Below are positions 1 to 28,600 of a stretch of DNA of 33,968 nucleotides, piece by piece. How positions within the stretch are numbered: the first letter of the stretch is position 1; each line of letters opens with the position of its first letter. Source of the stretch: Macrostomum lignano (lineage: Eukaryota); contig NIVC01004831.1 in the NCBI GenBank assembly GCA_002269645.1, positions 1 to 33,968 on the forward strand. The letters are read 5' to 3'. A model generated the notes under the pieces. That model saw nothing but the letters and a program-made list of their open reading frames with translations. It did no database searches and had not been told where the DNA came from. The position numbers were made by a program, and so were the translations under genes.

Positions 1-3000
1 GCTGCTGCACCGCTGTTAGAGACTGTTGGGTAAAATTGCGAAAAAGTAACAGTTTAAAGTGTTTACTGCGTCAATTGATATTCTCTCCTATCTACTCTCC
101 ATATCGACTCGCCCTACCAACTCTCCCTATCTACTCTACCTACTACTCTCTGTCTACTCTCCTACCTACCCTCCCTAACTAATCTCCCTGCCTTCTCTCC
201 CTGCCTTCTCTCCCTACCTACTTTCCCACCTACTCTCCCTGCCTACTCTCCCTACCTACTCTCCCTACCTACTCTCCCTACCTAACTCTCCCTATCTACT
301 CTCCCTACCTACTCTCCCTACCTACTCTCCCTACCAACTCTCCTACCTACTCTCCCTACCAACTCTCCCTACCTACTCTCCTACCAACTCTCCCTACCTA
401 CTTTCCCTACCTACTCTCCTACCTACTCTCCCTGCCTACTCTCCCTACCTACTCTCCCTACCTACTCTCCCTACCAATCTCCTACCTACTCTCCTACCAA
501 CTCTCCCTACCTACTATCCTACTTACTCTCCCTACTTACCCCTCCAACGGGCACAGCGTCGGCCTGCACGCTGCAGACGCAGCACTGATTAGCCGGCGCC
601 AACGGATCGAAGCATTTCACAATTCCATCGTCGAACCGGCAATCAGCCGACCTCGCCCGGCCGACTCGTCCGAATAAGCCAGATGAGTGCAGGCGGCCGA
701 CTCGCACGGGCAGATCGACGCACCGACGCTCGGCGTGGGCGTCAATTAATCGCAGAAATCTGGCGTGACCGCCGAACGCCAAGCCGGCCTGCTGTTGTTG
801 ATTCCAAGCCATCGCTCTAAGCCGATCTGGCAGGCCAACGAAAGCCGAGATCAACTGCGGACTGCTATTGTAGGGGCAGGCATAGTTGCGCCATAGACGA
901 ACGCAGCCGTCTGACCAGGCGCAGGCCAGTAAAGAATCTTCCGTATGCCAGTTTACTAGCTGAATATCTACTAGGAAATTGCCGCCGCTGCCGCCGCCGA
1001 CCATGCCGCCGTGGGCGCCGAACGAGTGCGAATGATGCGCCGGGAGCTGGTCTGACGCGAATGATGCTGATGCTGCAGCGAGCCCTGGTGCTGCCTGGTG
1101 TGGCCACCGAGACTGCCGCTAGCTGTTGAAATTGAGGAGATAATTATAGATTAGCCAATGACCAATGACCATTCTATTATAGATTAGCTAATGACCAATG
1201 ACCATTCTATTATAGATTAGCCAATGACCAATGACCATTCTATTATAGATTAGCCAATGACCAATGACCATTCTATTATAGATTAGCCAATGACCAATGA
1301 CCATTCTATTATAGATTAGCTAATGACCAATGACCATTCTATTATAGATTAGCCAATGACCAATGACCATTCTTTTATAGATTAGCCAATGACCAATGAC
1401 CATTCTATTATAGATTAGCCAATGACCAATGACCATTCTATTATAGATTAGCCAATAACTAATGACAAATCTATTATAGATTAGCCAATGACCAATCTAA
1501 CTAGCTCCACAATGACCAATCTAATTAGCTCTACAATGACCAATCTAATTAGCTCCACAATGACCAATCTAACTTGCTTCACAATGACCAATCTAACTAG
1601 CTCCACAATGACCAATCTAATTAGCTCTACAATGACCAATCTAATCAAAATCACAATGACCAATCAAATTAGCTCCACAATGATTTGACCAATCTAATCA
1701 AAATCACAATGACCAATCAAATTAGCTCCACAATGACCAATCTAACTAGCACCACAATGACCAATCTAATCAAATTTACAATGACCAATCTAATTAGCTT
1801 TACAATGACCAATCTAACTAGCTCCACAATGACCAATCTAATTATGTCCACAATGACCAATCTAATTAAATTCACAATGACCAATCTAATTAGCTTCACA
1901 ATGACCAATCTAAACAGCTCTTCAATGACCAATTTAATTATCACCACAATGACCAATCAAATTAACTCCACAATGACCAATCTAACTAGCTCCACAATGA
2001 CCAATCTAATTATAACCACAATGACCAATCAAATTAGCTCCACAATGACCAATCTAACTAGCTTCACAATGACCAATCTAACTTGCTCCACAATGACCAA
2101 TCTAACTTGCTCCACAATGACCAATCTAACTAGCTTCACAATGACCAATCTAACTTGCTCCACAATGACCAATCTAATTAAATTTACAATGATCAATCTA
2201 AACAGCTCCACAATGACCAATCTAATTAGCTCCACAATGACCAATCTAGTTAAATTCACTATGACTAATCTAATTAGCTCCACAATGACCAATCTAACTA
2301 GCTCCACAATGACCAATCTAATTAGCTCCACAATGACCAATCTAAACAGCTCCGTAAGAAACTCACTTCCAGCAGTTAGGCCGCCGCTAGACCGACGACT
2401 GCCGCCGGCGGAGCCGCCGCCAAAGGCCAGCAAGTTGACGCCTGACTCGGCATTGAAAGAGGCCAACCTACACAGATCAGGGTCCAGCACTTGTACGCTA
2501 GAATCGTCGCACAGCAATAACTGAGCCAACAAAGGATGGAAATGCAGGCTAACAGCCGGGGACTGCACAGTTCGGGTGCTTCGCAAAGCGAATTGTACTG
2601 AGCGACCGCCGCTACCAGCGGTTGCCAAGGCGACAGCGTCCTGAGCGGCCAGCCGATGCAGACTATGCAATAGCAGGCAGCTGAGCTCGCGGCTTTGAAA
2701 ATTAGCAGACAAAGGATCGGATTCCGTTGACAAGTCAGCTTGAGCTTGAGAAGCCATCGGCCTAGCAAATTGTGCGCAACAATATTCGAATAGTTTAGTT
2801 GTCAAGGGCTCGTTCGATACAACTGACGCAGCCGCGGCGCTTCTTGAACTCCAGTCGGCAGTTGAATAACTTGTCGTCGCCTCGTTAGCGGCCCCGGCGC
2901 TGTCGCTTTGACGACGAACTAAACCGACTAGGCCAGAGCGTCGATTGCCGCCGGTTGCCCCTGGCGACGGGGAGCGTCGTCGACTGTCTAAATTATCCAT

Positions 3001-6000
3001 CATGCCCAGTAGTATCCGGGTAGCAAACCGATTAGTAGAAATTGCTCCGGTTAGCGGAGTTGGCGGACTCCTACTGCTCAAATGATGATGATGCTGATGA
3101 TGCTGCAGGCCTAGATGTCGCTGTAATTTAGGACTGCCAGGCACGCTGCCAGAGGTGGAATCCTCTGCTGGCCGACTCGAACTCAATACTGCTGCAGAGG
3201 ATACTCTAGGAAATGTGCCATTGTTTGACAGTTTGGCATGAGTCTGCTGTTGCTGCTGCTGCTGCTGGCTCTGCTGCTGCTGTCCAGGCTTGGCGTATTG
3301 CTCCAGAATGCGTTGATCTTTGCGCAGTTTTTCAGATACACGAGAATAGACACTCTGGACTAGAGTGCCGGCCATCGACTGTACCTGTACATTGTTTCAT
3401 TCATATGGGTTGACTTTTTTATAGTTTAAGAACTAGGTACGAGTATAAGCATTATCTATAGTAAACAGCGTGTATCCAATGTAAACAGACTGTATCTATG
3501 GGTAAACAGTGTGTATCCAATGTAAACAGACCGTATCTATGGGTAAACAGTGTGTATCCAATGTAAACAGTCTGTATCTATGGGTAAACAGCGTTTATCC
3601 AATGTAAACAGACTGTATCTATGGGTAAACAGTGTTTATTCAATGTAAACAGAATGTATCTATGGGTTAACAGTGTGTATCTAATGTAAACAGTCTGTAT
3701 CTATGGGTAAACAGTGTGTATTCAATGTAAACAGAATGTATCTATGGGTTAACAGTGTGTATTCAATGTAAACAGAATGTATCTATGGGTAAACAGTGTG
3801 TATTCAATGTAAACAGAATGTATCTATGGGTTAACAGTGTGTATTCAATGTAAACAGTCTGTATCTATGGGTAAAAAGTGTGTATCCAATGTAAACAGTG
3901 TGTATCTAATGTAAACAGACCGCTGTATCTATGGGTTAACAGCGTGTATCCAATGTAAACAGATTGTATCTATGGGTAAACAGTGTGTATCCAATGTAAA
4001 CAGACCGCTGTATCTATGGGTAAACAGTGTGTATCCAATGTAAACAGTCCGTATCTATAGGTAAACAGTCTGTATCTATAGGTAAACAGTCCGTATCTAT
4101 AGGTAAACAGTCCGTATCTATAGGTAAACAGTCCGTATCTATAGGTAAACAGTCCGTATCTATAGGTAAACAGTCCGTATCTATAGGTAGACAGGCCGTA
4201 TCCAATGTAAACAAGCCGTATCTACGGTAAAAGTCCGTATCTACGGGTAAACAGACTCGCATCCAACATAAACAGCCCGTATCCAATGTAAACAGCCAGT
4301 TGCTAAGCACCCAAGCTACAAACCTGCGGCGCCGGGTCCCGATGCAGGAAGCAGAGAGATCGCCAGACCTGCTGATAGACGTTGCCAGATTTGAGCAGGC
4401 CGGCAAACGGTTGAGCAGTGGTTGGGCGTTTCAACCTGCGCCACCGCTCCGTATCCTCAATCTGTTGGATAACCACTGCAATCATTTCGTTCTCGAATAG
4501 TCGGGTAAAAGCGGCCAAAGCGCAGACTAATTCGCAGCGAACCAAAGCCGAGCAATCTGACAGAGACCGCTGAAGCAGTCTGAGTACAATAGTCTGATCA
4601 TTGCTACCGCTTAGATCCGAAGCGCGCAGACTCTGCTGTTCGGCGCTATTGCTGCCACTAGAAGCAGAAGACTGTTGTTGCGCAGAAGCATTAGCACTGT
4701 TATTGACATTGTCCATATAAGCTGCTAAAGCGTGCACGCAAGCCGCTCGAACTTTCGGTTGTCGATCGTCTAGAAGAGGCTCGTAGCCGTAGGCGGCGCT
4801 GGACGAGTACAGAGCTTCGTAGGCCGAACTGCGGGCTCCGTGCGATCTGCCCGGCTCATAGTTGGCCCAGATCTTGGCTAGGCAGAACACTAGAAACAGG
4901 CGATAGGTGACAGCCGGCAGGGCTTGGTCCAGCCGGACAGCTGGATCGTCAAGGTGCTCCAGTATAGTGCAGATCAGATTGCTGCGAATGCAGATCTCCT
5001 TAGCTTCAACAGATCGATTCATTAATCTAGCTAGTACGAACGCGGCCATGCCTCTTATTGACAAAGATTTCGGCGTTGTTAAAGGAGCAGGATCTTGTAG
5101 TACGTTGATAAAATAGCGAATATTGTCCTCTTTGACTAGGTCAAGCACTAGATTAGTGGAATGCTCAACCGCTACTATCTTAGCCCAGATGAATACTAGT
5201 TCCTCTTTCATATCTTTGCCTCCGTTCAGCAGCTTCAAGATGTAGGGAAAGGTGCCTACTGATAGGGTCTGATACACCGCATCGGGACCCAGATCCAGGT
5301 AGGAGCACAGAAGCTTCAGCGCTTTAGGCCTGTAGTACTGGGATAGCAGCACCTGCGATAGGGTTATAAAATAAAGCAGATCATGATTTCTTAGAAACAA
5401 ACCAAAACTCTAAATCTAGTCAAACAGACTCTCAATCTAGCTAAACAAAGAAGTTTAATATAGCCAAATAAAGACTAGCAATCTAGCCAAACAAAGACAA
5501 AAATGTAGCCAAACAGACTAACAATCTAGCCAAACAAAGACTACTAATCTATCTAAACAAAGACTTTTTATATAGCCAAATTAGGACCACTAATCTATCC
5601 AAACAAAGACTCTTAATATAGCCAAACAAAGACTACCAATCTAGCCGAACAAAGACTACTAAGATAGCCAAACAGAACCTATCAATGTACTCGAACAAAG
5701 ACTACTAATGTAGCTAAACAAACACTTTTAATACAGCCAAACAAAGACTATCGATCTGACTAAACAAAGAATTTTAATATAGCCAAACAAAGATTAAAAA
5801 TGTAGCCAAACAAAGATTAAAAATGTAGCCAAACAAAGACTACTAATCTAGCCAAACAGGAACTACCATCTACTCAAACAAAGACTACCAATACAGCTTA
5901 ACCAAAGTGATCAATCTAGCCAAACCAAGACTACCAATATAGATAAACCAAGACTATCATTCTATTGAGTTAAACAAAGGCTAAAAATCAATCTAACTCA

Positions 6001-9000
6001 GTTCCATATAAATACATACATCTATCTACATGAATGTACTAAACAATGCACAAACTAACCTGCAGCACAATGGGCAGATGCCAGGCGTCAGCTGGCGTCT
6101 TGCTGCCGGCAGATTTGAGCCAGACTTCAAAGCTAGCCAAATGATCGGCAAAAAACGAGCAAGTTTTGTAGGGCACCTGAAGCAGCGGGCCAGACTCCGG
6201 ATCTGGCATAGTCGATTGATGCAGATGCTGCTGATGATGATGATGATGATACTGGTGGTGATGGTGCTGCTGTTGTTGCTGCTGTTGCGCCTGAGCCTCG
6301 TGATTGCTAATCCATCGATGCACGTCCGGTAATTGGCGCATAAAATCGTCTACAACGTGATCCCAAGCCGACCACAGCGGATGCTTGTGCATGGGCGGCA
6401 GCAGCGGATGAGTCACTGGGGTGCAGCCGTAGCTGACGAGAACTCGTTCGGCTAGTAGGAAGTTGCGAAACAATGACGCCAATAGGGTGTCGTAACGGAA
6501 CAGCCGGTGGAACAGGTCTCTGTGCGGATGGATAGGGTAATTGTGAGTAAGAAGCGTTCATAAGACCCTTCGAGGGCCGATTTCTTATATAATTCAAAGC
6601 CGATTTTTTCCATATTTGAAGGCCGATTATGTCCAAATTTGAAGGCCGATTTCTTACATATTTGAAGGCTGATTTTCTTACATAATTGAAGATCGATTTT
6701 TACATAATTGAGGGCCGATTCAAAATAATTGAAGGCCGATTCTACATAATTAAAGGTCGGTTTTACATAATCGAGGGCTGATTTTTTACATAATTTAAGG
6801 CCGATTTTTACACAATGGAAGGCCGACTTCTCACAAAATTGAAGGCCAATTTCTCACATAATTAAAGGCCGATTCTAAATAATTAAAGGCCAATTTATTA
6901 CATAATTGAAGACCGATTCTTACTTAAATGAGGGCCGATTTTTTTACCTAATTGAGAGCCGATTTTTCACATATTTAAAAGCTTATTTTTACACAATAGA
7001 AGGCCGATTTCTTACATAATTGAATGCCAATTTCTTACATAATTGAATGCTAATTTCTTACATAATTGAATGCTAATTTCTTACATAATTGAATGCCAAT
7101 TTCTTACATAATTGAATGCCGATTTCTTACATAATTGAATGCCAATTTCTTACATAATTGAATGCTAATTTCTTACATAATTGAATGCTAATTTCTTACA
7201 TAATTGAATGCCAATTTCTTACATAATTGAATGCTAATTTCTTACATAATTGAATGCTAATTTCTTACATAATTGAATGCCAATTTCATACATAATTGAA
7301 TGCCGATTTCTTACATAATTGAATGCCAATTTCATACATAATTGAATGTCAATTTCTTACATAATTGAATGCCAATTTCTTACATAATTGAATGCCAATT
7401 TCTTACATAATTGAATGCCGATTTCTTACATAATTGAATGCCGATTTCTTACATAATTGAATGCCGATTTCTTACATAATTGAATGCCGAGTTCTTACAT
7501 AATTGAATGCCGATTTCTTACATAATGGAATGTCAATTTCTTACATAATTGAATGCCGATTTCTTACATAATTGAATGTCTATTTCTTACATAATTGAAA
7601 GCTGATTTAAAAAAAGAAAATTGGTTTGTAACATTCCAACAGCCTCACCTAGGAATAGAATTATAAGCGATAGTATCCGTAACGGCAGTGAAAATCCAAT
7701 TCAATTCTCCCAGCATAGATTTTCGCTCAGACAACTTGCCGGGTATATTAGACAGCATAGCCAGAGTTAGATCTGGAGATAGCCTATTACTGTAGCGAAT
7801 CCAGTACCAATGCAGAGCCGCCTTAATAGGCGTAGTCAGGCAGGCAGTAAACAAATCAGCAGGTAAGTCCGGATTCATTGGCAAAAATTCGTCAACACCG
7901 CAAGAGCACAATAATATCGAATTTTCCATGCTAACTTCGCTACCAGTTGAATAGGCGCACGAACTGCCGCCGCTGGATTTCTGCTGCTGATATTGTTCAG
8001 ATTGTTCCCAATCTTGGCGGCGTCGCTCGCAGAACGCTTCGTAGGATTTTAATACCTGCGTTTGGGGAGATTATTCGTATGAGGAACAGGTGAGATTATT
8101 TTGATTTGCAAATGACAATATTAGCTTTATTACCCAGATGTACACGTGAGATAATTGGCTTTATTAGCCGGATGTACAAGTGAGATAATTAGCTTTATTA
8201 CCCGGATGTACAAGCGAGATAATTAGCTTTATTACCCAGGTGTACAAGTGAGATAATTAGCTTTATTACCCTGATTTACAGGTGAGATAATTAGCTCTGC
8301 TATCCGGATGTACAGGTGAGATAATTAGTTTTAATCACCTGAATGTACAAGTGAGATAATTAGCTTTATTACCCGGATGTACAAGTGAGATAATTAGCTT
8401 TATTATCCGGATGTACAAGTGAGATAATTAGCTTTATTACCCGGATGTACAAGTGAGATAATTAGCTTTATTAGCCGGATGTACAAGTGAGATAATTAGC
8501 TTTATTACCCGGATGTACAAGTGAGATAATTAGCTTTATTACCCAGGTGTACAAGTGAGATAATTAGCTTTATTACCCTGATTTACAGGTGAGATAATTA
8601 GCTCTGCTATCCGGATGTACAGGTGAGATAATTAGTTTTATTACCTGAATGTACAAGTGAGACAATTAACTTTATTACCCGGATGTACATATTTCAAAAA
8701 AAGGTACACAGGAAGGTAAGCTAAACGCACCTGCCCTGCATTGTGACAGTCGATAACGTAGACGGAAGGCGAGCCAAGCCAGGACTGCAGGTCATACAAG
8801 GACAACGGTATGTACTGGGTAAAGTTTCGATTAAATACCCAAGTCTCGCCATTCTTAGTAGGCCTGGGCACTCCGTGGCCATTGAAATGGAACAGTATCC
8901 TGTCCTGTCTGGCGGTTCTACGCAAACTCAAACACTGCTTTTTCACTTCGTCGACAGTTGGATCGTTGCAAGTTTTATAACGAATTTTAGAATTCCACCG

Positions 9001-10207
9001 TTTGTATTGATTAACTAATAAGGTGGAAATTTCTTCAACCGCTTTGTTAGGATTCTTGCCCGAAGGATCGTACCAACAGTGTTGAACAGCGCTTGGTACC
9101 GGCTTCTGCACGTCCGGGGGGTCCGTGTCAACGTTCAGGCACAGGACTAGCAGTACGTTGGTGATTCGAACCTGGGTCCAAATGTTTGCGACAATAGGGG
9201 AAATCAATAATATTAAGGGCCCCTGAAGATGACTCTTCCTAAATAGGGGTGTGAAGGCGATTCTTCTGGGGATTATGAAGGCGATTCCTCTGGGATTATG
9301 AAGGCGATTCCTCTGGGGATTATGAAGGCGATTCCTCTGGGGATTATGAAGGCGATTCCTCTGGGGATTGTGAAGGCGATTCCTCTGGAGATTATGAAGG
9401 CGATTCCTCTGGGGATTGTGAAGGCGATTCCTCTGGGGATTGTGAAGGCGATTCTTCTGGGGATTATGAAGGCGATTCTTCTGGGGATTGTGAAGGCGAT
9501 TCTTCCAGAGGGTGTGAAGATGATTCTTCTGGGGTGTGAAGATAATTCTTTTGAGGTATGAAGGCGATTCTTCTGGGGTGTGAAGATAATTCTTTTGAGG
9601 TGTGAAGGCGATTCTTCCAGAGGGTGTGAAGATGATTCTTCTGGGGTGTGAAGATAATTCTTTTGAGGTGTGAAGGCGATTCTTCCAGAGGGTGTGAAGA
9701 TGATTCTTCTGGGGTGTGAAGATAATTCTTTTGAGGTGTGAAGGCGATTCTTCCAGAGGGTGTGAAGATAATTCTTTTGAGGTGTGAAGGCGATTCTTCC
9801 AGAGGGTGTGAAGATAATTCTTCTGAGGTGTGAAGGCGATTCTTCCAGAGGGTGTGAAGATGATTCTTTCCAGAAGTTTTGAACGTGATTCCTGAGTAGA
9901 ATATAGTCCAAATAATTTCCGACTGTGCTTAAGTTACAGATAATTATTATAAACGAGTCAGAAATGCCTCTAAGAAATTATCAATGTAGAAACAAACTAA
10001 AATTTCTTAAGAGTTGTAGACGCTAACCTTAGTCCCGTAACGCCAACTCTCCGCTATGCCTTCTACGCCGTTGGTTTCTTCGTGCAAATGGGGCGACGCA
10101 AAGGCTAAGGGAATATTCCACTCTGGCAGGCTGCGGGCCAAGCCAATGGGATAGCAGGCCAATTCCGCTTCGTCCACTCGTTTGGCGTCTTCTTCGTACA
10201 AGTGCAT
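1..10207 (-). CDS. RPTOR: Regulatory-associated protein of mTOR (RAPTOR), 3'-partial. Exons (minus): 10207-10028, 9171-8731, 8055-7649, 6519-6060, 5352-4324, 3384-2367, 1122-540, 22-<1
   Basis: Recognisable RAPTOR motifs in order: WNIPLAF...SWR, VLLVLCLNVDTDPPDV, RILFHFNGHGVPRPT, LPMNPDLPADLFTACLTTPIKAAL, LGELNWIFTAVTDTIAYN, LFRNFLLAERV, WHLPIVLQ|VLLSQ, VGTFPYILKLL, HEAT region, then WD40 (HFHPL, LLACAWSDGCVRLWRNY). GT-AG boundaries with consistent phase through exon 6. Exon 7 needs frameshifts (see findings). Confidence 0.93.
81..539. repeat. 13-bp minisatellite (CTACTCTCCCTAC; minus GTAGGTAGGGAGA) filling RAPTOR intron 7
   Basis: Direct reading of tandem units; degenerate toward the low-coordinate end. 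Confidence 0.95.
1141..2352. repeat. Compound minisatellite in RAPTOR intron 6: 33-bp unit (TAGATTAGCCAATGACCAATGACCATTCTATTA, about 1141-1485), then 24-bp unit (AATGACCAATCTAATTAGCTCCAC, about 1486-2352)
   Basis: Period read directly (1147 to 1180 = 33). The two units share AATGACCAAT and ATTAGC. Confidence 0.95.
3460..4295. repeat. 20/21-bp minisatellite (GTAAACAG core) in RAPTOR intron 5; about 41-bp dimer grading into a 21-bp monomer
   Basis: GTAAACAGtgTGTATCCAAT alternates with GTAAACAGacTGTATCTATGG, then a pure GTAAACAGTCCGTATCTATAG run at about 4040-4200. Confidence 0.95.
5410..5990. repeat. Degenerate ~23-bp minisatellite (AATCTAGCCAAACAAAGACTACT) in RAPTOR intron 4
   Basis: Recurrent TAGCCAAACAAAGACT core, diverged copies. 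Confidence 0.85.
6570..7610. repeat. ~23-bp minisatellite (AATTGAATGCCAATTTCTTACAT) in RAPTOR intron 3
   Basis: Homogeneous at about 7000-7600, degenerate (GAAGGCCGATTT variant) at 6570-7000. Confidence 0.95.
8085..8690. repeat. 34-bp minisatellite (GAGATAATTAGCTTTATTACCCGGATGTACAAGT) in RAPTOR intron 2
   Basis: Direct reading of tandem units. Confidence 0.95.
9230..9880. repeat. 22-24-bp minisatellite (GAAGGCGATTCCTCTGGGGATTAT and variants) in RAPTOR intron 1
   Basis: 24-bp monomer to about 9500, then a three-variant higher-order unit (24+22+22). Confidence 0.95.
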
Positions 10208-10339
10208 GCGGGTACTGCTCGGGCGGGAAATGGGGATTAACTATTTGTGACGAGAATGTATTTAGACAGACCTATCACATATGACCCCAATTATTAAAAT
10301 ATGATGCCAACTCCCTAGAATCCCTGGCAAAGACCCAAA

Positions 10340-11295
10340 ATCACTGGCTATGAATTAAAATACTTTGCTATGATCCAAACTAACTGGCTATGATCCAAAC
10401 TAACTGGCTATGATGCAAACTAACTGACTATGATCCAAACTAACTGGCTATGATCCAAACTAACTGGCTATGATCTAAACTAACTGGCTATGATCCAAAC
10501 TAACTGGCTATGATCCAAACTAACTGAATATGATCCAAACTAACTGGCTATGGTCCAAACTAACTGGCTATGATCCAAACTAACTGGCTATGATCCAAAC
10601 TAACTGGCTATGATCCAAACTAACTGGCTATGATCCAAACTAACTGACTATGATCCAAACTAACTGGCTATGATCCAAACTAACTGGCTATGATCCAAAC
10701 TACTTGGCTACGATCCAAACTAACTGGCTATGATCCAAACTAACTGGCTATGATCCAAACCAACTGGCTATGATCCAAACTAACTGACTATGATCCAAAC
10801 TACTTGGCTATGATCCAAACTAACTGGCTATGATCCAAACTACTTGGCTACGATCCAAACTAACTGGCTATGATCCAAACTAACTGGCTATGATCCAAAC
10901 CAACTGGCTATGATCCAAACTAACTGGCTATGATCCAAACTAACTGGCTATGATCCAAACTAACTGGCTATGATCCAAACTACTTGGCTACGATCCAAAC
11001 TAACTGGCTATGATCCAAACTAACTGGCTATGATCCAAACCAACTGGCTATGATCCAAACTAACTGGCTATGATCCAAACTAACTGGCTATGATCCAAAC
11101 TAACTGGCTATGATCCAAACTAACTGGCTATGATCCAAACTAACTGGCTATGATCCAAACTAACTGGCTATGATCCAAACTAACTGGCTATGATCCAAAC
11201 TAACTGGCTATGATCCAAACTAACTGGCTATGATCCAAACTAACTGGCTATGATCCAAACTAACTGGCTATGATCCAAACTAACTGGCTATGAAC
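10340..11295. repeat. Highly homogeneous 20-bp minisatellite (TATGATCCAAACTAACTGGC) upstream of the RAPTOR ATG
   Basis: About 45 near-identical units with a degenerate low-coordinate edge. Confidence 0.97.
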
Positions 11296-12114: not shown

Positions 12115-12324
12115 CACACATGCGCAACCCCTCTGATTTACACTGGCCGTGAGTCTCACTTATAAAAGAAGCAAACAAAAATTAACGTACTTAATAAAGG
12201 TAAACGGCAGGAATAACTACTACTGTAATTTGTAGGCTAAATGCCTCGTCGTCTAATTAGTGGGCATTTTTGCGACTTATCTTGGCTGGGCCCTCGCCAG
12301 CCGGCCGGGTGTTGCGCATGTATG
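12115..12324 (+). mobile_element. 210-bp non-autonomous hAT-type MITE
   Basis: TIR CACACATGCGCAAC...GTTGCGCATGTATG (13/14). 8-bp flanks CAATGAAA (12107-12114) and CGATGAAA (12325-12332) match 7/8. Internal similarity to the element at 16702. Confidence 0.8.
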
Positions 12325-12375
12325 CGATGAAATGTCAATTGTAGTCCAGAATGTACTTTTCTAACGACCTTTAGT

Positions 12376-12396
12376 TTTATTAATTAATAATTTATT
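12376..12396 (-). promoter_or_regulatory. Candidate polyadenylation signals of N4BP2
   Basis: Two AATAAA hexamers on the minus strand 10-30 nt after the TAG stop. Confidence 0.5.
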
Positions 12397-12405
12397 GATT
12401 GACAA

Positions 12406-17970: not shown

Positions 17971-18194
17971 ACACCAACCTTGTTAGTTAGAAAGTTTCAA
18001 AGAACCCGAGGGGCGAGGGCCAGATAGAGGGGCTTCGCGAGCTGGACTTTGCCGACCCCTGCTCCGGAGTTAAAGAAATCAATGGGAAACTGTTACATAG
18101 GCTGCTGATTTCAAAGATCTTGTCTGTGGTTGAAGGCTTCTATTCTGTTTTTTTGCTCTCCTGCCACACTTGCACCTACTACCCCTTGATCGCC

Positions 18195-19395
18195 TCTGAT
18201 TGCGACTTACTTCCCTCTTATTGCGACTTAGTTGCTCCTTTTGCGACTTACCTAATCCTTTTGCGACTTACCTAATCCTTTTGCGACTTGACCTAATCCT
18301 TTTTGCGACTTGACCTAATCCTTTTTGCGACTTAGTTGCTCCTTTTGCGACTTACCTAATCCTTTTTGCAACTTAGTTGCTCCTTTTGCGACTTACCTAA
18401 TCCTTTTGCGACTTACCTAATCCTTTTGCGACTTACCTAATCCTTTTTGCGACTTACCTAATCCTTTTTGCGACTTACCTAATCTTTTTGCGACTTGACC
18501 TAATCCTTTTTGCGACTTAGTTGCTCCTTTTGCGACTTACCTAATCCTTTTGCGACTTGACCTAATCCTTTTTGCGACTTGACCTAATCCTTTTGCGACT
18601 TGACCTAATCCTTTTTGCGACTTGACCTAATCCTTTTTGCGACTTAGTTGCTCCTTTTGCGACTTACCTAATCCTTTTTGCAACTTAGTTGCTCCTTTTG
18701 CGACTTACCTAATCCTTTTGCGACTTACCTAATCCTTTTGCGACTTGACCTAATCCTTTTTGCGACTTGACCTAATCCTTTTTGCGACTTAGTTGCTCCT
18801 TTTGCGACTTACCTAATCCTTTTTGCAACTTAGTTGCTCCTTTTGCGACTTACCTAATCCTTTTGCGACTTACCTAATCCTTTTGCGACTTACCTAATCC
18901 TTTTTGCGACTTACCTAATCCTTTTTGCGACTTACCTAATCTTTTTGCGACTTGACCTAATCCTTTTTGCGACTTAGTTGCTCCTTTTGCGACTTACCTA
19001 ATCCTTTTTGCAACTTAGTTGCTCCTTTTGCGACTTACCTAATCCTTTTGCGACTTACCTAATCCTTTTTGCGACTTACCTAATCCTTTTTGCAACTTAG
19101 TTGCTCCTTTTGCGACTTACCTAATCCTTTTGCGACTTACCTAATCCTTTTGCGACTTGACCTAATCCTTTTTGCGACTTAGTTGCTCCTTTTGCGACTT
19201 ACCTAATCCTTTTGCGACTTACCTAATCCTTTTTGCGACTTACCTAATCCTTTTTGCGACTTACCTAATCTTTTTGCGACTTGACCTAATCCTTTTTGCG
19301 ACTTAGTTGCTCCTTTTGCGACTTACCTAATCCTTTTGCGACTTGACCGAATCCTTTTTGCAACTTAGTTGCTCCTTTTGCGACTTACCTAATCA
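18195..19395. repeat. 20-22-bp minisatellite (TTTTGCGACTTACCTAATCC / TTTTGCGACTTAGTTGCTCC) inside the hAT element
   Basis: Two interleaved unit types sharing TTTTGCGACTT; blocks recur, suggesting higher-order structure. Confidence 0.95.
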
Positions 19396-19879
19396 TTTGT
19401 GCAATTTAATTTGCTTCTGCTGCAACTTGTTTTTCTTTTGCTTCACCATTTTACTTCCCTATATTGCTTTTTCCTCTTGCATTTTTTCGTTTTTGGTCAA
19501 CTCAATTTTGCGACTTACCCTGGTCCACCACAATTCACGGTGGCCGGATCGGCCAGCTCGGCCAGCAGTTGCGCATGTATGATGTATAATATATAAGCTT
19601 GAACTATATTGCAAATTTTTATTAAAGAGATACTTAAGATTTAGCTTTATAACTTAACTTTTATATTAAAATAATATCTATATAATATTATAATGGCTTT
19701 ATATGCCAAGTAAATAATTATGTATACTTGCTTCCAAAACTAGATTCTGTTAAACAATTAAGTATACATAGAGCATATTTTATATACTGCTAATAAATAC
19801 GATACTAAGAGGAAATCAAAGTGAAATAAAGTAAACCTCATATATAATGATATTAATATTAAAATGCATTAGATATTAG

Positions 19880-20275
19880 TAGAGGTCAGACCAGATTAAA
19901 ATCTTTAGGCGGGATCAGGAAAAATTTTTTCTTAGGATCAGGATCGGGATTCGGGAATTGGGATCAGGTCTTTTAGTGTATTGTAGCTTGTAGGTCTATA
20001 TAAAGTTAAACAAAATTGAGCTAAAAATGTCAAGATCAAAAAAGTAGAATACAACAAAATTGATGCAAAGTTTTGTAACCAATAAATTAATAATGTAATG
20101 AGTACAAGGTAAAACAAAATACATTCAAGTAATCACTAATTCTATAAATTTTAATCAAAAGACCTGTTCCTATTTATCATGTTTTTTAGGGTTGGGATTC
20201 TAGTCCCGCAGGAATCCAATTTTCTTCAGGATCCCGAGATTTCGGGATCGGGATTGGGATCCCATCCAACCTCTA
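19880..20275. mobile_element. 396-bp hAT-type MITE with TAGAGGT termini
   Basis: Ends TAGAGGTCAGA... and ...TCCAACCTCTA, perfect 8-bp TSD GATATTAG (19872-19879, 20276-20283), and clustered subterminal GGGATC motifs at both ends. Confidence 0.8.
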
Positions 20276-22632
20276 GATATTAGACAATATATAATGTAAT
20301 AGAAAGGCTATGACCTTTTAATTGCAATAATACAAGATACCAGTATAACAATATATTTGCAAAATCATTATAATTTTAGCAATTTTATCATTATAATTTT
20401 AGGTAGCAAAATATGTAAGTGCTTATACACACATACAAATGGAGGTCCAAAGTTGAATGTTAAAAAAGCATTCTATTAACACTCATATCAACTATTAGCA
20501 TGCTACATTCAATTTGTTTTGTATGTATATGTGTATATATGTGAATGCTTGCATGCAAAAAAATTTGTAAATATAATGCTATACTTATGGCAACATTGTG
20601 TTAAAGTTTTGTCAACATTGGTTTCAAATGACAAAAGTAAATCAGGCGCATTACGTGGGCCACCCTAGATTATAGTGTAGTAATAGTGTTATAGGGAGAA
20701 GGAGTAAGGATGATATATACCTAGCATAGTTAGTAACATATTAAAGTTTATATCCCAAAACCAGTGGTCAACTTTCCTCAGATCTCAGCTCCAAGTGACA
20801 TAATTCACAATCACACCATGTTTACAGGAAGCAGGCTTATATAGGCTGATTTCACAATCAAGCTAATATGAAAAAATAAACTAATATTAATGTATTGTCA
20901 ATGATAATATTAAGAATTAATTATTTCATTCATTCATTATTCAACTAATAAATAATTAATCATTTGACTAATAGCTTTGGGATGGAAACATTAACATGTT
21001 GCTGAGTATAGTATTTATATATATCATTATAATATATAGCCATAGCCTAGACCCTACTATAGCCAATGCTAGAATGCTAGAAAATTAGAATTATAGACAC
21101 ATTTATAGGCCTACACATTTTCTTATGTTTAAATAAAGAGTGCCTTGACATTAAACACTTGGCTTGATTGCTTGTCTTATTTTCTAGATTTTATTTAAAA
21201 GCAGTGCAAATAAAGAAAATGAGATTAAAATGAAAATAGGTAATAAGACTATAGTATAGCTATAGGCCTATCTAAACCACACTTCCATATCCACTTTTTA
21301 AATTTCAATCAGGTGCAAATTTAAATTTTAGAATGTATAGGACCCCTATGCCATGGCAATGCTGAGTAAGTGAGTGCTGATGATGTGATACACATTGCAC
21401 AAAAAACAGGTGGTGGCTGGAGGGGAATGATGGGATAGGCCTAGCCTAGGCTAGGGATAGCAGATGCAAATGGGGTGATATTCTAATGATAAAATACCTA
21501 GACAACAAATTTGGTGACAACAAAATGACAGAACCACTAATGGCGACTGAATTTTGCCTTTGAGACTGATGTCGATGTGATCCTGATGATGAGCTAGAGC
21601 TAGGCCTTGGCTAACTTGGCAGGTGGATTTCTAGCAAAAAAGATTAAAAACCATATTAATGAGTGAAATAAATATGTTGCATGTTGGTCTGTACCACTCT
21701 GCCTTTTACTCTTTTAATTAGCATTAAGTATCCTTGGTGTAGACTATAGTTGAAGTTAGTAAGCTGTAAATAATACAAAATAGTACTGTACGCAGTGTAC
21801 TCAGTGTACTTGGCGTGTCGCGGAATAGATGACGGCGCGAATCCATGATGTTGAACCCACTACCCACCCACGCGCTGATAAAACTCCGATACTTTCACAA
21901 AATAACAAAGCAGAACTTTTTTTTCAACGAGAAGGTATTACATTTTTTTTATAGTATTTAGGGTTTTTACCTTTATATTGATTTCTGTTTTGGTGCTTTA
22001 GCATAGGCTAAATATACGTGTCTTGAAAAAGTTTAACCTCATGATTTTCGTAGAATCAAAGATTTAGCTATTATTTTTTTCATGGGTGATTATTCATTTA
22101 ACTAGTATTTAAAAGTTAAGTAAACGAACAATTTCATTTTTTATAAATTTAAAATTTATGTTTTAAAATCAAAATTTTCTTTTTGTTAATTTCTAAGTAT
22201 ATAGGCCATAGACCTACCGAAGTTTATGCCATTATTATTGAAAATTATTATTGTTTTCGTGAGCTAAAGCGATCAGCATAAAGCATGAAACTTCTGACTG
22301 GGTGGCTAAAATTAGAAATTAAAAAAATAAATTTAAAATTTTAACTGTAATATCAAATATAAAAAATATTGTGACTGAAAGTACTGCAATTATGTACATT
22401 GTAGTAATTTATACTCATGAAGTATACATGTAATTAGCTACAATATATTTACTATGCCATTACACTTTTACTTACCATAATTTTAGTAAGTTTTTGACAT
22501 ATTGAGCTATTAATAACATCTACTAAACATAAAAATTAAATTTAAGTTGGCAATTTTAAGATAGTATTGAAATCTATACTTTGATATCTGAATTTTGATT
22601 TCCGCTTTATAATTGACTCATCACTTACCAGA

Positions 22633-25600
22633 ATGTGCTCCATAGAACCATGCTCCTTATTGCAACAGTCAAATTATGATTGCATCATAATAGTTGGCGA
22701 CAATCCATTGCATCTTGGCCAGAATTTGTCAGCATTTTCCAAAACAATTCAACAATATTGCGCTGTAAGTAGAACCAGTTACATTACTCTTTTCATTACT
22801 AAAAATCGTGTTATATATGAAACACCCTGTTGTAGAAAAATTGTTCAATTATGTCGCCAAAATCGACAACCTTTGTGCCCTGCAGCGAGTCGGTCGCTCC
22901 AGCAGGCCGGCTGGTGTTCGCCCACACTGGGCCTTTGAATCGAGACTTTGATGACAGTCGCAGTCTCTATGATGCAGCCCAGCGCGGCATTGAACTGGCC
23001 ATATCGGCTGGGTCGCGCTCACCCCTCCTGTGCCGAGCTTGGCTTGGCAGCCTGCCTAGCGATCAATGGTCGATGGATTTAAATAACTTGGATCGCTGCA
23101 TTGCACTTGGCGCTTTGCAGGCTGTATATTGCCCGTTGGAGGTGCGGGAAGCTACATGTAAGCTTTGAGTTAACGGTTGGAATTTTCTACATGTATTTCC
23201 AGGTAAATTACAACAGAACTACATTAAGTCGCGACTTTCTTGGTTCTTGGTTCATCTGCACCTGTTTCTGTCTATTCTGTTGTCTTGTTATTTTATCTCT
23301 CTTCCTGGCCGCCTTCTTGAAATATTTGATTAGTGTTGAGGTGTCCTTGTCTTCTGGACTCTCATCTCACTGTCACTACTGTAAGGCGGTATAATAACTT
23401 CGATTATCAGTGTGAGAGCCAAATAACTGAGACGGCGGATTCGACAAACTTGTACTTATTTTTTACTATATTGTTAGTATATAGGATTGTTCGGGCGAAC
23501 TGATAGGTTCGATCTCTGTTGTAAGGAGGGGATCGGTTGTCCCTAAAGATACATTACTATTTCTCATTGGCTGAGGTTGGCGTCGTGTCCTCTGCTTTTG
23601 CTTGAATTGGAACGCATTGATTGGCTGGAAATGCATTCAAACTGTATGGGAACTTTCTGGGCCAAAATGTATTGCTTCATGTCGATAGGCTCTTCAATAA
23701 TGGCGCCTCTTTACTAAGACGCGCATTCCAAATTTCCAACCCCTCTTTTACACTTGCACTCAATCCCCTTCCGTTAGTTAACATCTTATAAATATATCCA
23801 TTTAGGCTCTGCGCCCTACTTACTGTTTGTTTTTGTTTTCCAACAATGATTAAATTGTTTACTTGCTTCTCTACATCATATTCTACGATTCGTGGCTTTC
23901 ATAATTATTAAAAGGCTAATAAATATTCCATGAGCTCACAGTTGCATATGGCTTGCTTGTTAATGTTAACTTGTTACAGTGTTCTGTCTATCTCATTTTC
24001 AATCAGTGCCTTGGTGATTGGGTGTGAACCGCACACTCTGTGACTTGATAGTTGGGTGTGAACCGCACACTGTGTCTTGGTGGTTGGGTGTGAACCGCAC
24101 ACTCTGTGCCTTGGTGATTGGGTGTGAACCGCACACTGTGTCTTGGTGGTTGGGTGTGAACCGCACACTCTGTGCCTTGGTGATTGGGTGTGAACCGCAC
24201 ACTCACTGCATTGGTGATTGGGTGTGAACCGCACACTCAGTGTCTTGGTGATTGTGAACCGCACACTCAGTGACTCAGTGCCTTGGTGATTGTGAACCGC
24301 ACACTCTGTGCCTTGGTGATTGGGTATGAACCGCACACTCAGATCATTGGTGATTGGGTGTGAACCGCACACTCTGTGCCTTGTTGGTTGGGTGTGAACC
24401 GCACACTCAGAGCATTGGTGATTGGGTGTGAACCGCACACTCACTGCATTGGTGATTGGGTGTGAACCGCACACTCAGTGCATTGGTGATTGGGTGTGAA
24501 CCACACACTCTGTGCCTTGTTGGTTGGGTGTGAACCGCACACTCAGTGCCTTGTTGGTTGGGTGTGAACCGCACACTTACTGCATTGGTGATTGGGTGTG
24601 AACCGCACACTCAGTGCATTGGTGATTGGGTGTGAACCGCACACTCACTGCATTGGTGATTGGGTGTGAACCGCACACTCACTGCATTGGTGATTGGGTG
24701 TGAACCGCACACTCACTGCATTGGTGATTGGGTATGAACCGCACACTCAGTGCCTTAGTGATTGGGTATGAACCGCACACTCTGTGCCTTGTTGGTTGGG
24801 TGTGAACCGCACACTCAGTGCCTTGTTGGTTGGGTGTGAACCGCACACTCAGTGCCTTGTTGGTTGGGTGTGAACCGCACACTTACTGCATTGGTGATTG
24901 GGTGTGAACCGCACACTCTGTGCCTTGGTGGTTGGGTGTGAACCGCACACTCACTGCATTGGTGATTGGGTGTGAACCGCACACTCACTGCATTGGTGAT
25001 TGGGTGTGAACCGCACACTCACTGCATTGGTGATTGGGTGTGAACCGCACACTCTGTGCCTTGGTGGTTGGGTGTGAACCGCACACTCACTGCATTGGTG
25101 ATTGGGTGTGAACCGCACACTCACTGCATTGGTGATTGGGTGTGAACCGCACACTAAGTGCATTAGTGATTGGGTGTGAACCGCACACTCTGTGCCTTGG
25201 TGGTTGGGTGTGAACCGCACACTCAGTGCATTGGTGATTGGTGTGAACCGCACACTCAGTGCATTGGTGATTGGGTGTGAACCGCACACTCAGTGCATTG
25301 GTGATTGGGTGTGAACCGCACACTCACTGCATTGGTGATTGGGTGTGAACCGCACACTCACTGCATTGGTGATTGGGTGTGAACCGCACACTCACTGCAT
25401 TGGTGATTGGGTGTGAACCGCACACTCTGTGCCTTGGTGGTTGGGTGTGAACCGCACACTCTGTGCCTTGGTGGTTGGGTGTGAACCGCACACTCACTGC
25501 ATTGGTGATTGGGTGTGAACCGCACACTCACTGCATTGGTGATTGGGTGTGAACCGCACACTAAGTGCATTAGTGATTGGGTATGAACCGCACACTCTGT

Positions 25601-28600
25601 GCCTTGGTGGTTGGGTGTGAACCGCACACTCAGTGCATTGGTGATTGGTGTGAACCGCACACTCAGTGCATTGGTGATTGGGTGTGAACTCTTAATGATT
25701 TTTAGAAAGAGAAGAATAATTTTTCAACTGGTTTTGCGCTCTTTGATTCAATCTTCGTGAGCAAAGCATCATGAAATTAGACGAAACAAATTGTGTAATT
25801 ATATTTAGAGATTAAAAACACACGTATTTAAACAGGCAACAAAATGCAGCCCTGGTTAGCAGACTTGGCTACCTGGTTAATCAAGAAGACGATGCCACTG
25901 CAGCATTGGTGACTCAGCGATTCAACTTCATCCGAGCTCTGGAGTCCGGCCGCCAACTTGCCAGAGACATTGGCGGCTCAGATCCGGAACGAATGTCGCC
26001 TGGTCGCATTGCGGATCGACTTGCGTCGGAATTTGGCGTCGTTAGCAACGGTCCAGTTGTCATGGAGATTGAAGAATCAATTAAGCCGGAGAAATATCCG
26101 TTAATGGCGGCTGTAGACAGAGGCAGCGTTGAGAGGCACCGTGGAAAGGTGGTACACCTCACCTATGAGGGCGAGCTGAATAGTCTGGTAAATTATTAAT
26201 TACAATACAATCTTTTCATAGCAACAAAAATTTATGCTGTCTTATAAGTTTGGCTGTTAAATCTGCTTTCATACTTGCGTTGCAGTGGGAGCTGATATGA
26301 TAAGTCAGCTTCTACCCTCTCTCGGTCAGCTTCTACCCTCTCCCAGTCAGCTTCTACCCTCTCTCGGTCAGCTTCTACCCTCTCCCAGTCAGCTTCTACC
26401 CTCACTCGGTCAGCTTCTACCCTCTCCCAGTCAGCTTCTACCCTCTCCCAGTCAGCTTCTACCCTCTCCCACTCAGCTTCTACCCTCTCCCAGTCAGCTT
26501 CTACCCTCTCCCATTCAGCTTCTACCCTCACTCGGTCAGCTTCTACCCTCTCCCATTCAGCTTCTACCCTCTCCCACTCAGCTTCTACCCTCTCCCAGTC
26601 AGATTCTACCCTCTCCCATTCAGCTTCTACCCTCACTCGGTCAGCTTCTACCCTCTCCCAGTCAGCTTCTACCCTCTCTCGGTCAGCTTCTACCCTCTCC
26701 CAGTCAGCTTCTACCCTCTCTCGGTCAGCTTCTACCCTCTCCCAGTCAGCTTCTACCCTCACTCGGTCAGCTTCTACCCTCTCCCAGTCAGCTTCTACCC
26801 TCTCCCAGTCAGCTTCTACCCTCTCCCACTCAGATTCTACCCTCTCCCATTCAGCTTCTACCCTCTCCCAGTCAGCTTCTACCCTCTCCCAGTCAGCTTC
26901 TACCCTCTCCCAGTCAGCTTCTACCCTCTCCCACTCAGCTTCTACCCTATCTCTGTCCGTCAGAAATGATTCGAAAGCAGCTCCCTGCTCCTCGCAACCA
27001 TCCCACAGGCCGATGCCGCTGACTGCTCGCACGTGACACTCCTTCTAGCTGGCAAAGGCGTCACGTTCGATACTGGTGGACTGAGCCTAAAAACCGGTGG
27101 CAGCATGGTCGGCATGCACCGGGACAAGTGTGGTGCAGCAGCGGTTGCCGGCTTGTTCAGCCTGCTTGCCCAGCTGCGTCCGCCAAATCTGACGGCTCGC
27201 TGCAGCCTCGACCTGGTGCGAAACTCCATCGGGTCAGGGAGCTACTCGCCCGACGAGGTCATCGTCAGCCGGGCCGGTCGTCGAGTTCGCGTGGTGAACA
27301 CCGACGCCGAAGGCAGAATGATTCTAGCTGATCTGCTGTGTCTGCAGCGTGAGCGAGCGTTGGAGCTTGCGGAACCGAGCAGAGCCAGGCTGTTTACCGT
27401 GGCGACCCTCACTGGCCACGCTGTGCTAGCCTACGGCCAGGGATATTCCATAGCGATGGACAATGGGCCGGCAAGAAGGCTCGGAGTGGCCGCAAAGTTA
27501 CAAGCTGCTGGCGATCTAATTGCCGATCCGTTTGAGGTGGAAATGCAAAGTCAATTTTTTATTCGTTAATTTTTTCTATTAGAGAAACTGCTCGCTGATT
27601 TGTTAAGAAGATAACTGATCGCTGATTGGTTAAGAAGAGAACTGATCGCTGATTGGTTAAGAAGAGAACTGATCGCTGATTGGTTAAGAAGAGAACTGAT
27701 CGCTGATTGGTTAAGAAGAGAACTGATCGCTGATTGATTGAGAAGAGAACTGATCGCTGATTGGTTGAGAAGAGAACTGATCGCTGATTGGTTGAGAGGA
27801 AAAATGATCGCTAATTGGCTGACAACAGAGCTATATTCGACTACTTTATGAACCCTCGCTATTTAGATTTCCACTGTCAGACGCGAAGACTGGGACTTTG
27901 TTCGGTCATCAGGTCCATACGAGGAGCTACTGCAGTGCAATCCGCAACCCAGTGCAGCCACCCCGCGTGGCCATCAATTTCCGGCCGCATTCTTTGCCGC
28001 AGCTTCCGGTTTAGATAAGGTACAGATATTGATTAGCGTAATAACTGAATTGCTTCGACAGTATTGTAGTTATATAGTTGCAAAATCTTGAATTATAATT
28101 TGAATGTATATATGAAGCTACGGTCGGAATTCCAGTACTTCGTGTACTCGCTTGACCGTACGCTTAAGCGAGACGTTTTTAAATTGGGTAATTGACGTAA
28201 GTGGGCGTATATCAGATGTGTTTATTGTTAAACTTAGAAATTGGTAATAAATACCTCGTGTACTTTGGTTGCAAGTGTGGCAAATATTAATATATATTAT
28301 ATTACGTGCAGTCGTGGTCCTGCCGTTCAAGCTATGGTTTTATTATAATTATGCCTAGTGGATTTAACTGGTTTGATTTAGATAGTGGCTGCCTCCAGGT
28401 CCCTGATTTTCTCTAATTCTAGTACTTAGCGATCAAAGAATAAAAGAAGGAAACCAAAAATTTATTTACTAAAAGGATATAAAACCGGTAGCAGTCTTAC
28501 TGTACCTAGTATTCCCCGACTTTATCCCCCGATGTTACCTCTTATTCTTTAAGTTCGAAGTTGGTTTCAAGACTAAAATTTGCTTGGAAAGGAACGACGT

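Follow-up and report, generated by a model that had tools for sequence, protein, structure and literature searches.

Private minisatellites make up most of the intron sequence of three genes on a Macrostomum lignano scaffold

The scaffold NIVC01004831.1 (33,968 bp) belongs to the Mlig_3_7 assembly (GCA_002269645.1) of Macrostomum lignano, a free-living flatworm that serves as a model for regeneration and transgenesis, and was analysed over its whole length (hereafter the window). It carries three recognisable genes, whose introns consist mainly of tandem arrays: 67% of the intron sequence (8,623 of 12,957 bp) is array, the ~8 kb of exon contain none, and every arrayed intron holds exactly one array locus. 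The arrays are genuine and inherited, their lengths continue to change, and they are neither specific to introns nor young. With a probability of about 0.75, we consider that short ancestral introns, together with other dispensable DNA, each gained a private minisatellite by local duplication, followed by drift in copy number and trimming of the arrays from the zone needed for splicing.

Pfam searches identify the three genes as RAPTOR, an N4BP2-like gene and an M17 aminopeptidase (LAP). GT-AG models were built by hand for all of them and have zero internal stops:

1 to 10207, minus strand: RAPTOR, eight exons (10207-10028, 9171-8731, 8055-7649, 6519-6060, 5352-4324, 3384-2367, 1090-540, 22-1)
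12406 to 16500, minus strand: N4BP2-like gene, exons 16500-16385, 16284-16151, 15644-15247, 14399-13798, 13404-12406
22633 to 29267, plus strand: LAP, M17 aminopeptidase of the W07G4.4 / zgc:152830 type, exons 22633-22764, 22836-23157, 25850-26187, 27009-27536, 27867-28019, 29118-29267

The 5-exon N4BP2-like model (782 aa) is 93% identical to PAA81215.1, the RNA-seq-guided GenBank model of a sister copy. The acceptor of its intron 2 (45 nt) and the donor of its intron 4 (64 nt) were moved to fit PAA81215.1, whereas introns 1 and 3 match PAA81215.1 exactly; with the junctions of PAA81215.1, every array is still intronic.

Sixteen substantial arrays and one CT-rich low-complexity tract, called with Tandem Repeats Finder (TRF), constitute 33% of the window. 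All 16 arrays have the organisation of minisatellites, with head-to-tail units of 13-41 bp, higher-order periods of at most 102, 4-57 copies and 71-97% matches (a slash within a sequence, here and below, marks a splice or splice-like junction):

82 to 539, minus strand: RAPTOR intron 7 array, 13-nt unit, sense GTAGGTAGGGAGA, ~36 copies; intron 23-539, 3' residual 59 nt
1143 to 2353, minus strand: RAPTOR intron 6 arrays, 33 nt x 10.7 at 1143-1496 and 24 nt x 36 at 1486-2353; intron 1091-2366, 5' residual 13 nt, 3' residual 52 nt
3453 to 4297, minus strand: RAPTOR intron 5 array, 41-nt (20+21) unit, found in both sister copies; intron 3385-4323
5413 to 5964, minus strand: RAPTOR intron 4 array, 23-nt unit, the most degenerate (71% matches, z = 27); intron 5353-6059
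6576 to 7608, minus strand: RAPTOR intron 3 array, 23-nt unit containing GTAAGA in sense; intron 6520-7648
8120 to 8689, minus strand: RAPTOR intron 2 array, 34-nt unit; intron 8056-8730
9247 to 9869, minus strand: RAPTOR intron 1 array, 24-nt unit with 46/68-nt higher-order periods; intron 9172-10027
10324 to 11293, minus strand: RAPTOR-upstream array, 20-nt unit, 48.5 copies, between N4BP2 and RAPTOR, 117 nt upstream of the RAPTOR ATG
13519 to 13696, minus strand: N4BP2 intron 4 array, 39-nt unit, 4.4 copies by TRF or ~5 counting a degenerate first copy; intron 13405-13797
14482 to 15063, minus strand: N4BP2 intron 3 array, 24-nt unit, 24 copies, 95% matches; intron 14400-15246
18221 to 19442, unstranded: IG2 array in the N4BP2-LAP spacer, 20-nt unit, 57 copies, minus-strand unit AAGGATTAG/GTAAGTCGCAA
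24003 to 25689, plus strand: LAP intron 2 array, 34-nt unit, 49.8 copies; intron 23158-25849
26303 to 26948, plus strand: LAP intron 3 array, 21-nt unit, 30.8 copies; intron 26188-27008
27581 to 27818, plus strand: LAP intron 4 array, 27-nt unit with CTGATTGGTTA, 8.8 copies; intron 27537-27866
30830 to 31196, unstranded: array downstream of LAP, 22/51/102-nt periods, neighbouring open reading frames (ORFs) without a Pfam match
33857 to 33966, unstranded: scaffold-end array, 22-nt unit, 5 copies, 97% matches, stopping 2 nt before the scaffold end

TRF recovered all unit sizes listed in an initial annotation of this DNA (13; 33 and 24; 41, equal to 20+21; 23; 23; 34; 24; 39; 24; 34; 21; 27; 22 bp) together with every array on that list, from which the large arrays at 10324-11293 and 18221-19442 had, however, been omitted.

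Arrays are present in all seven introns of RAPTOR, two of the four introns of N4BP2 and three of the five introns of LAP (12/16). The initial annotation had reported 13 of 18 arrayed introns; the 12 in these genes are upheld, but the additional "secreted gene" it drew on, whose intron would hold the array at 30830-31196, was not recovered: no recognisable gene and no Pfam match was found among the ORFs at 29.3-34 kb. More generally, the gene-unassigned regions of the window give zero Pfam and zero Rfam matches. Removal of the array leaves a short core of 59-266 nt, as had been proposed, with the exception of LAP intron 2 (1,005 nt), which alone among the arrayed introns keeps much unique sequence (845 nt on its 5' side). 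The short introns without an array (71 and 100 nt) are indeed first introns, but intron 1 of RAPTOR and that of a LAP paralogue described below carry arrays. Similarly, the statement that almost every long intron is arrayed holds for 12/16 introns but fails for two long ones, neither of them a first intron:

15645 to 16150, minus strand: N4BP2 intron 2, 506 nt, array-free
28020 to 29117, plus strand: LAP intron 5, 1,098 nt, array-free by TRF, periodicity z = 1.3

No decayed arrays were detected in the array-free introns and spacers, where the periodicity z is at most 3.7, as in exons, compared with 27 for the most degenerate array. Arrays cover 20-26% of the non-intronic non-coding DNA of the window, the lower value referring to the 13 kb left besides introns and exons. 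Introns represent 29.5% of the non-array non-coding DNA, yet hold 12/16 arrays (P = 2e-4). The density is thus higher in introns than elsewhere, in agreement with the initial annotation, but large arrays also lie outside introns. The sense-strand G+C of the arrays varies from ~0.29 to 0.56, exon GC is ordinary, and the intronic arrays have no consistent sense-strand compositional skew (8/12, p = 0.39).

Within introns, the arrays keep clear of the acceptor. The distance between array end and acceptor is 48-160 nt (median 62) and reaches at least 48 nt in 12/12 intronic arrays, for which uniform placement gives P = 7.5e-4 for at least 48 nt being left on one given side. On the other side, the distance from donor to array start extends from 0 to 845 nt. 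This asymmetry fits purifying selection on the zone between branch point and acceptor, with little constraint beyond the donor. The lower extreme is found in RAPTOR intron 7, where the array opens with the functional donor (GGG/GTAAGTAGGGAGAGTAAGTAGGA; GGG/GTAAGTAGGGAGA GTAAGTAGGA...). The amplified unit is therefore the intron's own 5' end, and this identity of unit and donor sequence points to a local origin. A donor-like GTAAGT or GTAAGA occurs in sense orientation inside three units. The claim that arrays stop short of exons is correct in that no exon bp is involved, but one array starts at the donor GT itself; and the 3' zone that is always spared is as expected from splicing constraints, but arrays are not confined to introns.

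At the scale of the sampled loci, the private nature of the units is supported by comparison with an unlinked M. lignano locus, NIVC01002768.1 (L009), which carries an ancient LAP paralogue (53% identity). Arrays make up 38% of L009, are found in 4/4 introns of the paralogue, intron 1 included, and amount to ~33% of the sequence beyond the annotated gene, with 5.6 kb within 10 kb downstream and 1.1 kb within 10 kb upstream of it; the non-genic arrays reach 3.6 kb. Among the ~30 arrays in the 61 kb of these two loci there is no common unit, and no multi-locus satellite monomer was found across the two sampled loci. Inside the window, k-mer sharing between units exceeds chance only for the RAPTOR intron 6 pair, whose 33-nt and 24-nt units have an 11-mer in common; the 24-nt unit is also present in a sister copy (L012, below). 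By a birthday-problem argument, ~30 arrays without a repeated unit would imply at least some hundreds of distinct units genome-wide. The claim that no transposons are needed is supported as well: all-versus-all comparison of 120-nt array flanks yields only chance 8-13-mers, with no terminal inverted repeats (TIRs) and no ends resembling long terminal repeats (LTRs). BLAST similarity between window and L009 is limited to the homologous exon and a CT-rich tract.

LAP and its paralogue in L009 also allow the introns and their arrays to be dated relative to each other. Three intron positions look shared (after ...YC followed by A or Q, DPFE/IST and GLDK/HG), and the arrays at these positions are unrelated; the introns therefore predate their arrays. 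Introner elements, known from certain algae and other protists, are introns carried by transposons, with one dispersed family creating new introns. They resemble the present case in that many introns of a genome are shaped by repeated DNA, whereas the M. lignano array sequences are all different and the introns are older than the arrays. No introner-like signature was found in the window, the intron contents being all different and the positions apparently shared with the ancient paralogue.

Two side observations concern L009. A GenBank "gene" of 417 aa (19805-21058) lies wholly inside a 45-nt x 80-copy array (19778-23404), and is probably an ORF through the repeat and not a real protein. The CT-rich tract of L009 (2676-2840) is the sole non-genic likeness to the window, where a similar tract at 17330-17672 is followed ~170 nt further on by an AG-rich tract (17840-17954) on the same strand; judged from their composition, the two could form a hairpin or H-DNA.

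The neopolyploid genome of M. lignano comprises three subgenomes (S, L1 and L2; PMC10733133), and two sister copies of the window were reached via the N4BP2 protein cluster, L010 (NIVC01000544.1) and L012 (NIVC01003776.1). L010 is 96-100% identical to the window in exons and 94.4% identical in non-array intron DNA (~5.6% diverged), whereas L012 is 99.4-100% identical in exons and only ~0.4% diverged in unique non-coding DNA (32 mismatches in ~8.1 kb); RAPTOR exons are 98-100% identical in the two. In every alignable array, consensus unit and position are kept across all copies, whereas the lengths differ:

RAPTOR intron 5 array: window 845 bp, L012 802 bp, L010 747 bp
RAPTOR intron 4 array: window 552 bp, L012 552 bp, L010 412 bp
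RAPTOR intron 3 array: window 1033 bp, L012 918 bp, L010 901 bp
RAPTOR intron 2 array: window 570 bp (16.7 copies), L012 570 bp, L010 980 bp (28.8 copies)
RAPTOR intron 1, whole intron: window 856 nt, L012 602 nt, L010 1053 nt
RAPTOR-upstream 20-mer array: window 970 bp, L012 853 bp, L010 1230 bp
N4BP2 intron 4 array: window 5 copies, L012 5 copies (178 bp, as in the window), L010 2 copies
N4BP2 intron 3 array: window 582 bp, L012 582 bp, L010 505 bp
LAP intron 2 array: window 1687 bp, L012 1714 bp, L010 705 bp
LAP intron 3 array: window 646 bp, L012 646 bp, L010 outside coverage
IG2 array: window 1,222 bp, L012 354 bp, L010 without the whole 3.8-kb segment

Relative to L010, array length ratios range from 0.42 to 1.72; taken together, the differences amount to 1,461 bp in the colinear gene region (13.1 kb), which is essentially the entire difference in intron length. 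Between window and L012, lengths are unequal for about half of the arrays and exactly equal for six. Because copy number differs even at ~0.4% divergence, the process is still running. At the same time, units are on average as similar to one another within an array as they are between copies (identities of 0.80/0.79/0.80 and 0.93/0.92/0.93, for example), and the copies have many exact variants in common. The arrays and their variant repertoires are therefore older than the L010 split, with no re-homogenisation afterwards. The active amplification suggested by the initial annotation is thus seen in the copy numbers of the three homeologs, but it acts on old arrays, shared with a copy that is ~5.6% diverged.

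Two other histories were considered. Concerted evolution since the subgenome split was not seen, within-array and between-copy identity being equal, and the birth of the N4BP2 intron 4 array from single-copy sequence is rejected since L010 already has 2 copies. Separately, the N4BP2-LAP spacer differs structurally between the window (16584-20421) and L010 (14019-15065 and 15676-18661, reverse-complemented). The 3.8-kb segment bearing IG2 is present in the window and L012 only, an unrelated 3-kb segment is present in L010 only, and terminal repeats bound neither of them. The alignable ends of this spacer are 84-86% identical, compared with ~94% for the intron flanks.

From these data we infer the following course of events. 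A local stretch of 13-41 bp would be tandemly duplicated in place, through replication slippage or microhomology-mediated duplication, and the new array would then grow or shrink by slippage or unequal exchange, with no transposon involved. A start in place is also supported by the two-copy tandem duplications in unique spacer described below and by the 39-nt repeat of N4BP2 intron 4, with 2 copies in one homeolog and 5 in the other two. Ancestral introns would have been short (~60-100 nt, like the two short array-free ones), so that a single array of 0.2-1.7 kb would come to form most of each intron. Selection would eliminate arrays reaching into exons or into the final ~45-50 nt of an intron, which contain branch point, pyrimidine tract and acceptor, and would tolerate them nearly anywhere else, the donor included. 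Arrays would be long-lived, their unit and position being kept across the subgenome split while the copy number drifts.

Several points weigh against this explanation. The sample consists of two unlinked loci (~61 kb) of a ~760-Mb genome, from which privacy and generality are extrapolated. All three copies come from one assembly of the PacBio continuous long-read (CLR) era, for which chimeric scaffolds and expanded or collapsed variants are known (PMC10733133), and some length differences, above all those separating window and L012 (for instance 1,222 versus 354 bp in IG2), could reflect assembly error or polymorphism among pooled worms. The three-copy comparison has no outgroup, so gains and losses of arrays are unpolarised. 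In addition, the intronic excess of arrays is not obviously predicted by neutral seeding followed by selection. This excess may stem from incomplete annotation and from functional intergenic DNA; transcripts overlapping repeats were dropped from the annotation (PMC5730564), and "intergenic" labels are therefore soft. Lastly, outside the IG2 array, 3-5 other sites carry a single copy of its unit core, which on the minus strand is TAAGTCGCAA (within AG/GTAAGTCGCAA). Exact copies are located at 12270-12279, 16735-16744 and 19508-19517 (minus strand), and copies with one mismatch at 16759-16768 (minus strand) and 23225-23234 (plus strand). All of them are in sense orientation to the local gene, and the chance expectation for the exact 10-mer is ~0.07. 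The IG2 unit is therefore not strictly private, and the initial claim of locus-private units, which agrees with the lack of sharing among ~30 arrays, has to be relaxed for this core.

Two of the solo copies lie in a context that resembles a splice site. One is found in ACCAGG/GTAAGTCGCAAAA, ~70 nt downstream of TATATATTATA, and another reads TTTTTTACATAG/GTAAGTCGCAT, with acceptor and donor juxtaposed.

Among the alternatives, an origin coupled to transcription or splicing is unlikely but keeps the most force. It holds that array seeding favours spliced-out DNA (introns and outrons), selective trimming of random seeds being insufficient, and possible routes are R-loops, replication-transcription conflict or reverse transcription of intron RNA. 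The intronic excess and the single array locus in each arrayed intron are in line with it, as are the three units with a sense donor-like motif and the frequent trans-splicing in M. lignano (PMC5730564). Two "intergenic" arrays could also sit in a 5' untranslated region (5'-UTR) intron or an outron, given nearby donor- and acceptor-like sites. In particular, the RAPTOR-upstream array is preceded by a donor-like CAG/GTAAAG and followed by acceptor-like AGs 52-108 nt downstream; it is intergenic or, going by these motifs, possibly part of a 5'-UTR intron or outron. The recorded gene coordinates are CDS extents and thus carry no information on the 5' end. Coupling to transcription is opposed by the missing strand skew (8/12, p = 0.39), by the arrays of L009 that lie outside its gene on both sides, and by the fact that the unit begins at the donor in one intron only, while incomplete annotation softens the contrast between intron and intergenic DNA from which it draws its main support. 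A bolder form appears just as doubtful to us, namely that a lineage-specific high-rate process seeds private minisatellites preferentially in introns and outrons, that this process and not transposons sets intron length genome-wide, and that a large part of the 32-36% by which the three subgenomes diverge in indel length comes from it. Intron size would then read out the dynamics of tandem duplication, with the branch-point-to-acceptor zone as the only bound.

A regional effect, in which unequal crossing-over in a hyper-recombining or subtelomeric domain fills non-coding DNA with arrays, has a smaller chance of being correct. Precedents are known from the mouse pseudoautosomal region (PAR) and bird dot chromosomes. 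In PAR genes (bioRxiv 10.1101/2022.03.26.485930), introns are mostly minisatellite, exons are intact, arrays also occur between genes, and copy number is unstable, with unequal exchange as the proposed cause. Bird dot chromosomes (bioRxiv 10.1101/2025.10.17.683159; PMC12954441) are likewise compact and gene-dense and are enriched for intronic minisatellites, and in the window arrays fill intergenic DNA too. However, the PAR is a single 700-kb hyper-recombining region with extreme exon GC and is dominated by one family (31-bp mo-2 and relatives), whereas M. lignano has the pattern at no fewer than two unlinked loci, each array having its own unit and exon GC not being raised. The dot chromosomes form a special chromosome class with sequencing drop-out and arrays rich in G-quadruplex (G4) and other non-B sequence; in M. 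lignano array composition is varied and assembly is normal. Furthermore, L009 equals the window in array density and intron pattern, and tandem and simple repeats account for 15% of the whole genome (PMC5730564).

An origin of the arrays from dispersed elements, either as internal repeats of miniature inverted-repeat transposable elements (MITEs) or Helitrons or as multi-locus satellites inserted into introns, is very improbable. The recurrence of the IG2 core motif at several sites and the location of IG2 in a segment carried by only some of the homeologs would suit such an origin, as would a 23-nt array in LAP intron 2 of L010 that is absent from the window. Against these stand the lack of a common unit at the two loci, the absence of shared flanks, TIRs and LTR-like ends, and the restriction of window/L009 similarity to one homologous exon and the CT-rich tract. 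Least credible of all is the view that the assembly of noisy long reads created the arrays or their lengths. In its favour, Mlig_3_7 was assembled with Canu from PacBio CLR data, REAPR rates only 64% of its bases as error-free, and it includes chimeric, expanded or collapsed scaffolds. Against it, three separately assembled scaffolds agree on units and intron positions between flanks with copy-specific substitutions, six arrays are identical in length between window and L012, and the array maximum of 1.7 kb is below typical long-read length.

The richness of M. lignano in tandem repeats is itself established. Its genome contains 15% simple and tandem repeats and 21% LTR elements, with ~5 introns per gene and a mean intron of 1.1-1.4 kb (PMC5730564), and its subgenomes differ by ~2% in single-nucleotide polymorphisms but by 32-36% once indel length is counted (PMC10733133). 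Our data agree with this landscape, being drawn from the same tandem-repeat-rich genome, whose homeologs differ mainly by indels. Neither intronic arrays nor array-length change as a source of indels is described in these two papers, to which the comparison is confined (Wasik et al. 2015 lies outside it), and the words tandem repeat, intron and satellite are absent from PMC10733133. Bulk repeat content was thus already known, and the intron-by-intron anatomy is new relative to both papers.

Other genomes offer partial parallels. In Daphnia pulex (PMC3152781) and in Chlamydomonas and Volvox (PMC3887541), tandem repeats are enriched in introns, units >6 bp included, and those of Chlamydomonas/Volvox lie near intron-exon junctions. 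Their density is, however, ~10-fold lower (in Chlamydomonas at most ~4% of the genome, compared with 33-38% of the M. lignano loci and 67% of the intron bases), and neither study describes a single private array in each intron. In Y-linked fertility genes of Drosophila (PMC6508621), tandem repeats also set intron length, but these are megabase simple satellites common to several genes, in heterochromatin and in a handful of testis genes, unlike the kilobase-scale private arrays in ordinary housekeeping genes reported here. The window pattern is an extreme, locus-private and apparently genome-wide variant of such intronic-minisatellite phenomena.

If the pattern holds genome-wide, it would explain why the mean intron exceeds 1 kb despite a functional core of <100 nt, why the M. 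lignano genome resists short-read assembly, why repeat-filtered annotation drops genes, and why subgenomes ~98% identical per base differ by about one third in indel length. It would also provide a clear case of intron-size expansion without transposons. Thousands of independent minisatellites, each in triplicate, would make rates of birth, growth and loss measurable, and the arrays would map the intron sequence that the spliceosome needs, which in the window is ~0 nt past the donor and ~48 nt before the acceptor.

The remaining observations concern the individual genes and spacers. The spliced RAPTOR model has 1369 aa and its 3' end lies off the scaffold edge; it contains the Pfam domains Raptor_N (1.3e-59), HEAT and WD40, and its top PDB match is human RAPTOR. 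Its exons include in-frame trinucleotide repeats at 3244-3282, 6224-6288 and 3082-3106 that encode poly-Q and poly-H (for example QQQQQQQHHHHQYHHHHHQQH), and exon 4 has a 6-nt gap relative to L010. Slippage therefore takes place in exons too, only in multiples of three. A distant RAPTOR relative at another locus (L004) has other intron positions and zero arrays.

The N4BP2-like gene encodes AAA_33 kinase, CUE and Smr domains (Pfam). At 16501-16518 (minus strand), L010 reads ATG GAA TCA AAA GGG CAG, the annotated start (MESKGQ...), whereas codon 3 is a stop in the window (ATG GAA TAA). PAA46500.1 (662 aa), the GenBank model of the window scaffold, starts further downstream and is devoid of the AAA_33 kinase domain. 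Judged by this stop codon, the window copy may have lost its N-terminus or be decaying, unless the AUG comes from a trans-spliced leader; the acceptor GGGCAG/CAAGAA is in frame.

LAP contains a Peptidase_M17 domain (Pfam) and is intact, with 6 exons coding for 540 aa plus stop, 97% identical to M. lignano A0A1I8J601, yet it has no GenBank model on the window scaffold. Transcripts overlapping repeat annotations were left out of the GenBank submission (Wudarski et al., PMC5730564). Such repeat-based exclusion may be the cause here, and genes with array-filled introns may be systematically absent from public annotation. At the junction of LAP intron 2 and exon 3 (25836-25850), another LAP copy, P0020, reads EATGNRNAALVG, while the window model reads EAT-SLVS. 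The window is apparently one base shorter, with AACAAAAT versus the AACAGAAAT implied by P0020, and a different acceptor would therefore be used; from this comparison, splice-site choice seems to differ between homeologs beside the largest array.

Just past the LAP stop, 29757-29856 and 30093-30192 form a 100-nt inverted repeat with 99% complementarity and a 236-nt spacer, which by its arrangement looks like a foldback/MITE-like element or a recent palindromic duplication. Finally, unique spacer contains two-copy tandem duplications at 11624-11693 (34 nt x 2.0, 88% identity) and 22130-22177 (20 nt x 2.2), which are candidate newborn (proto-)arrays.

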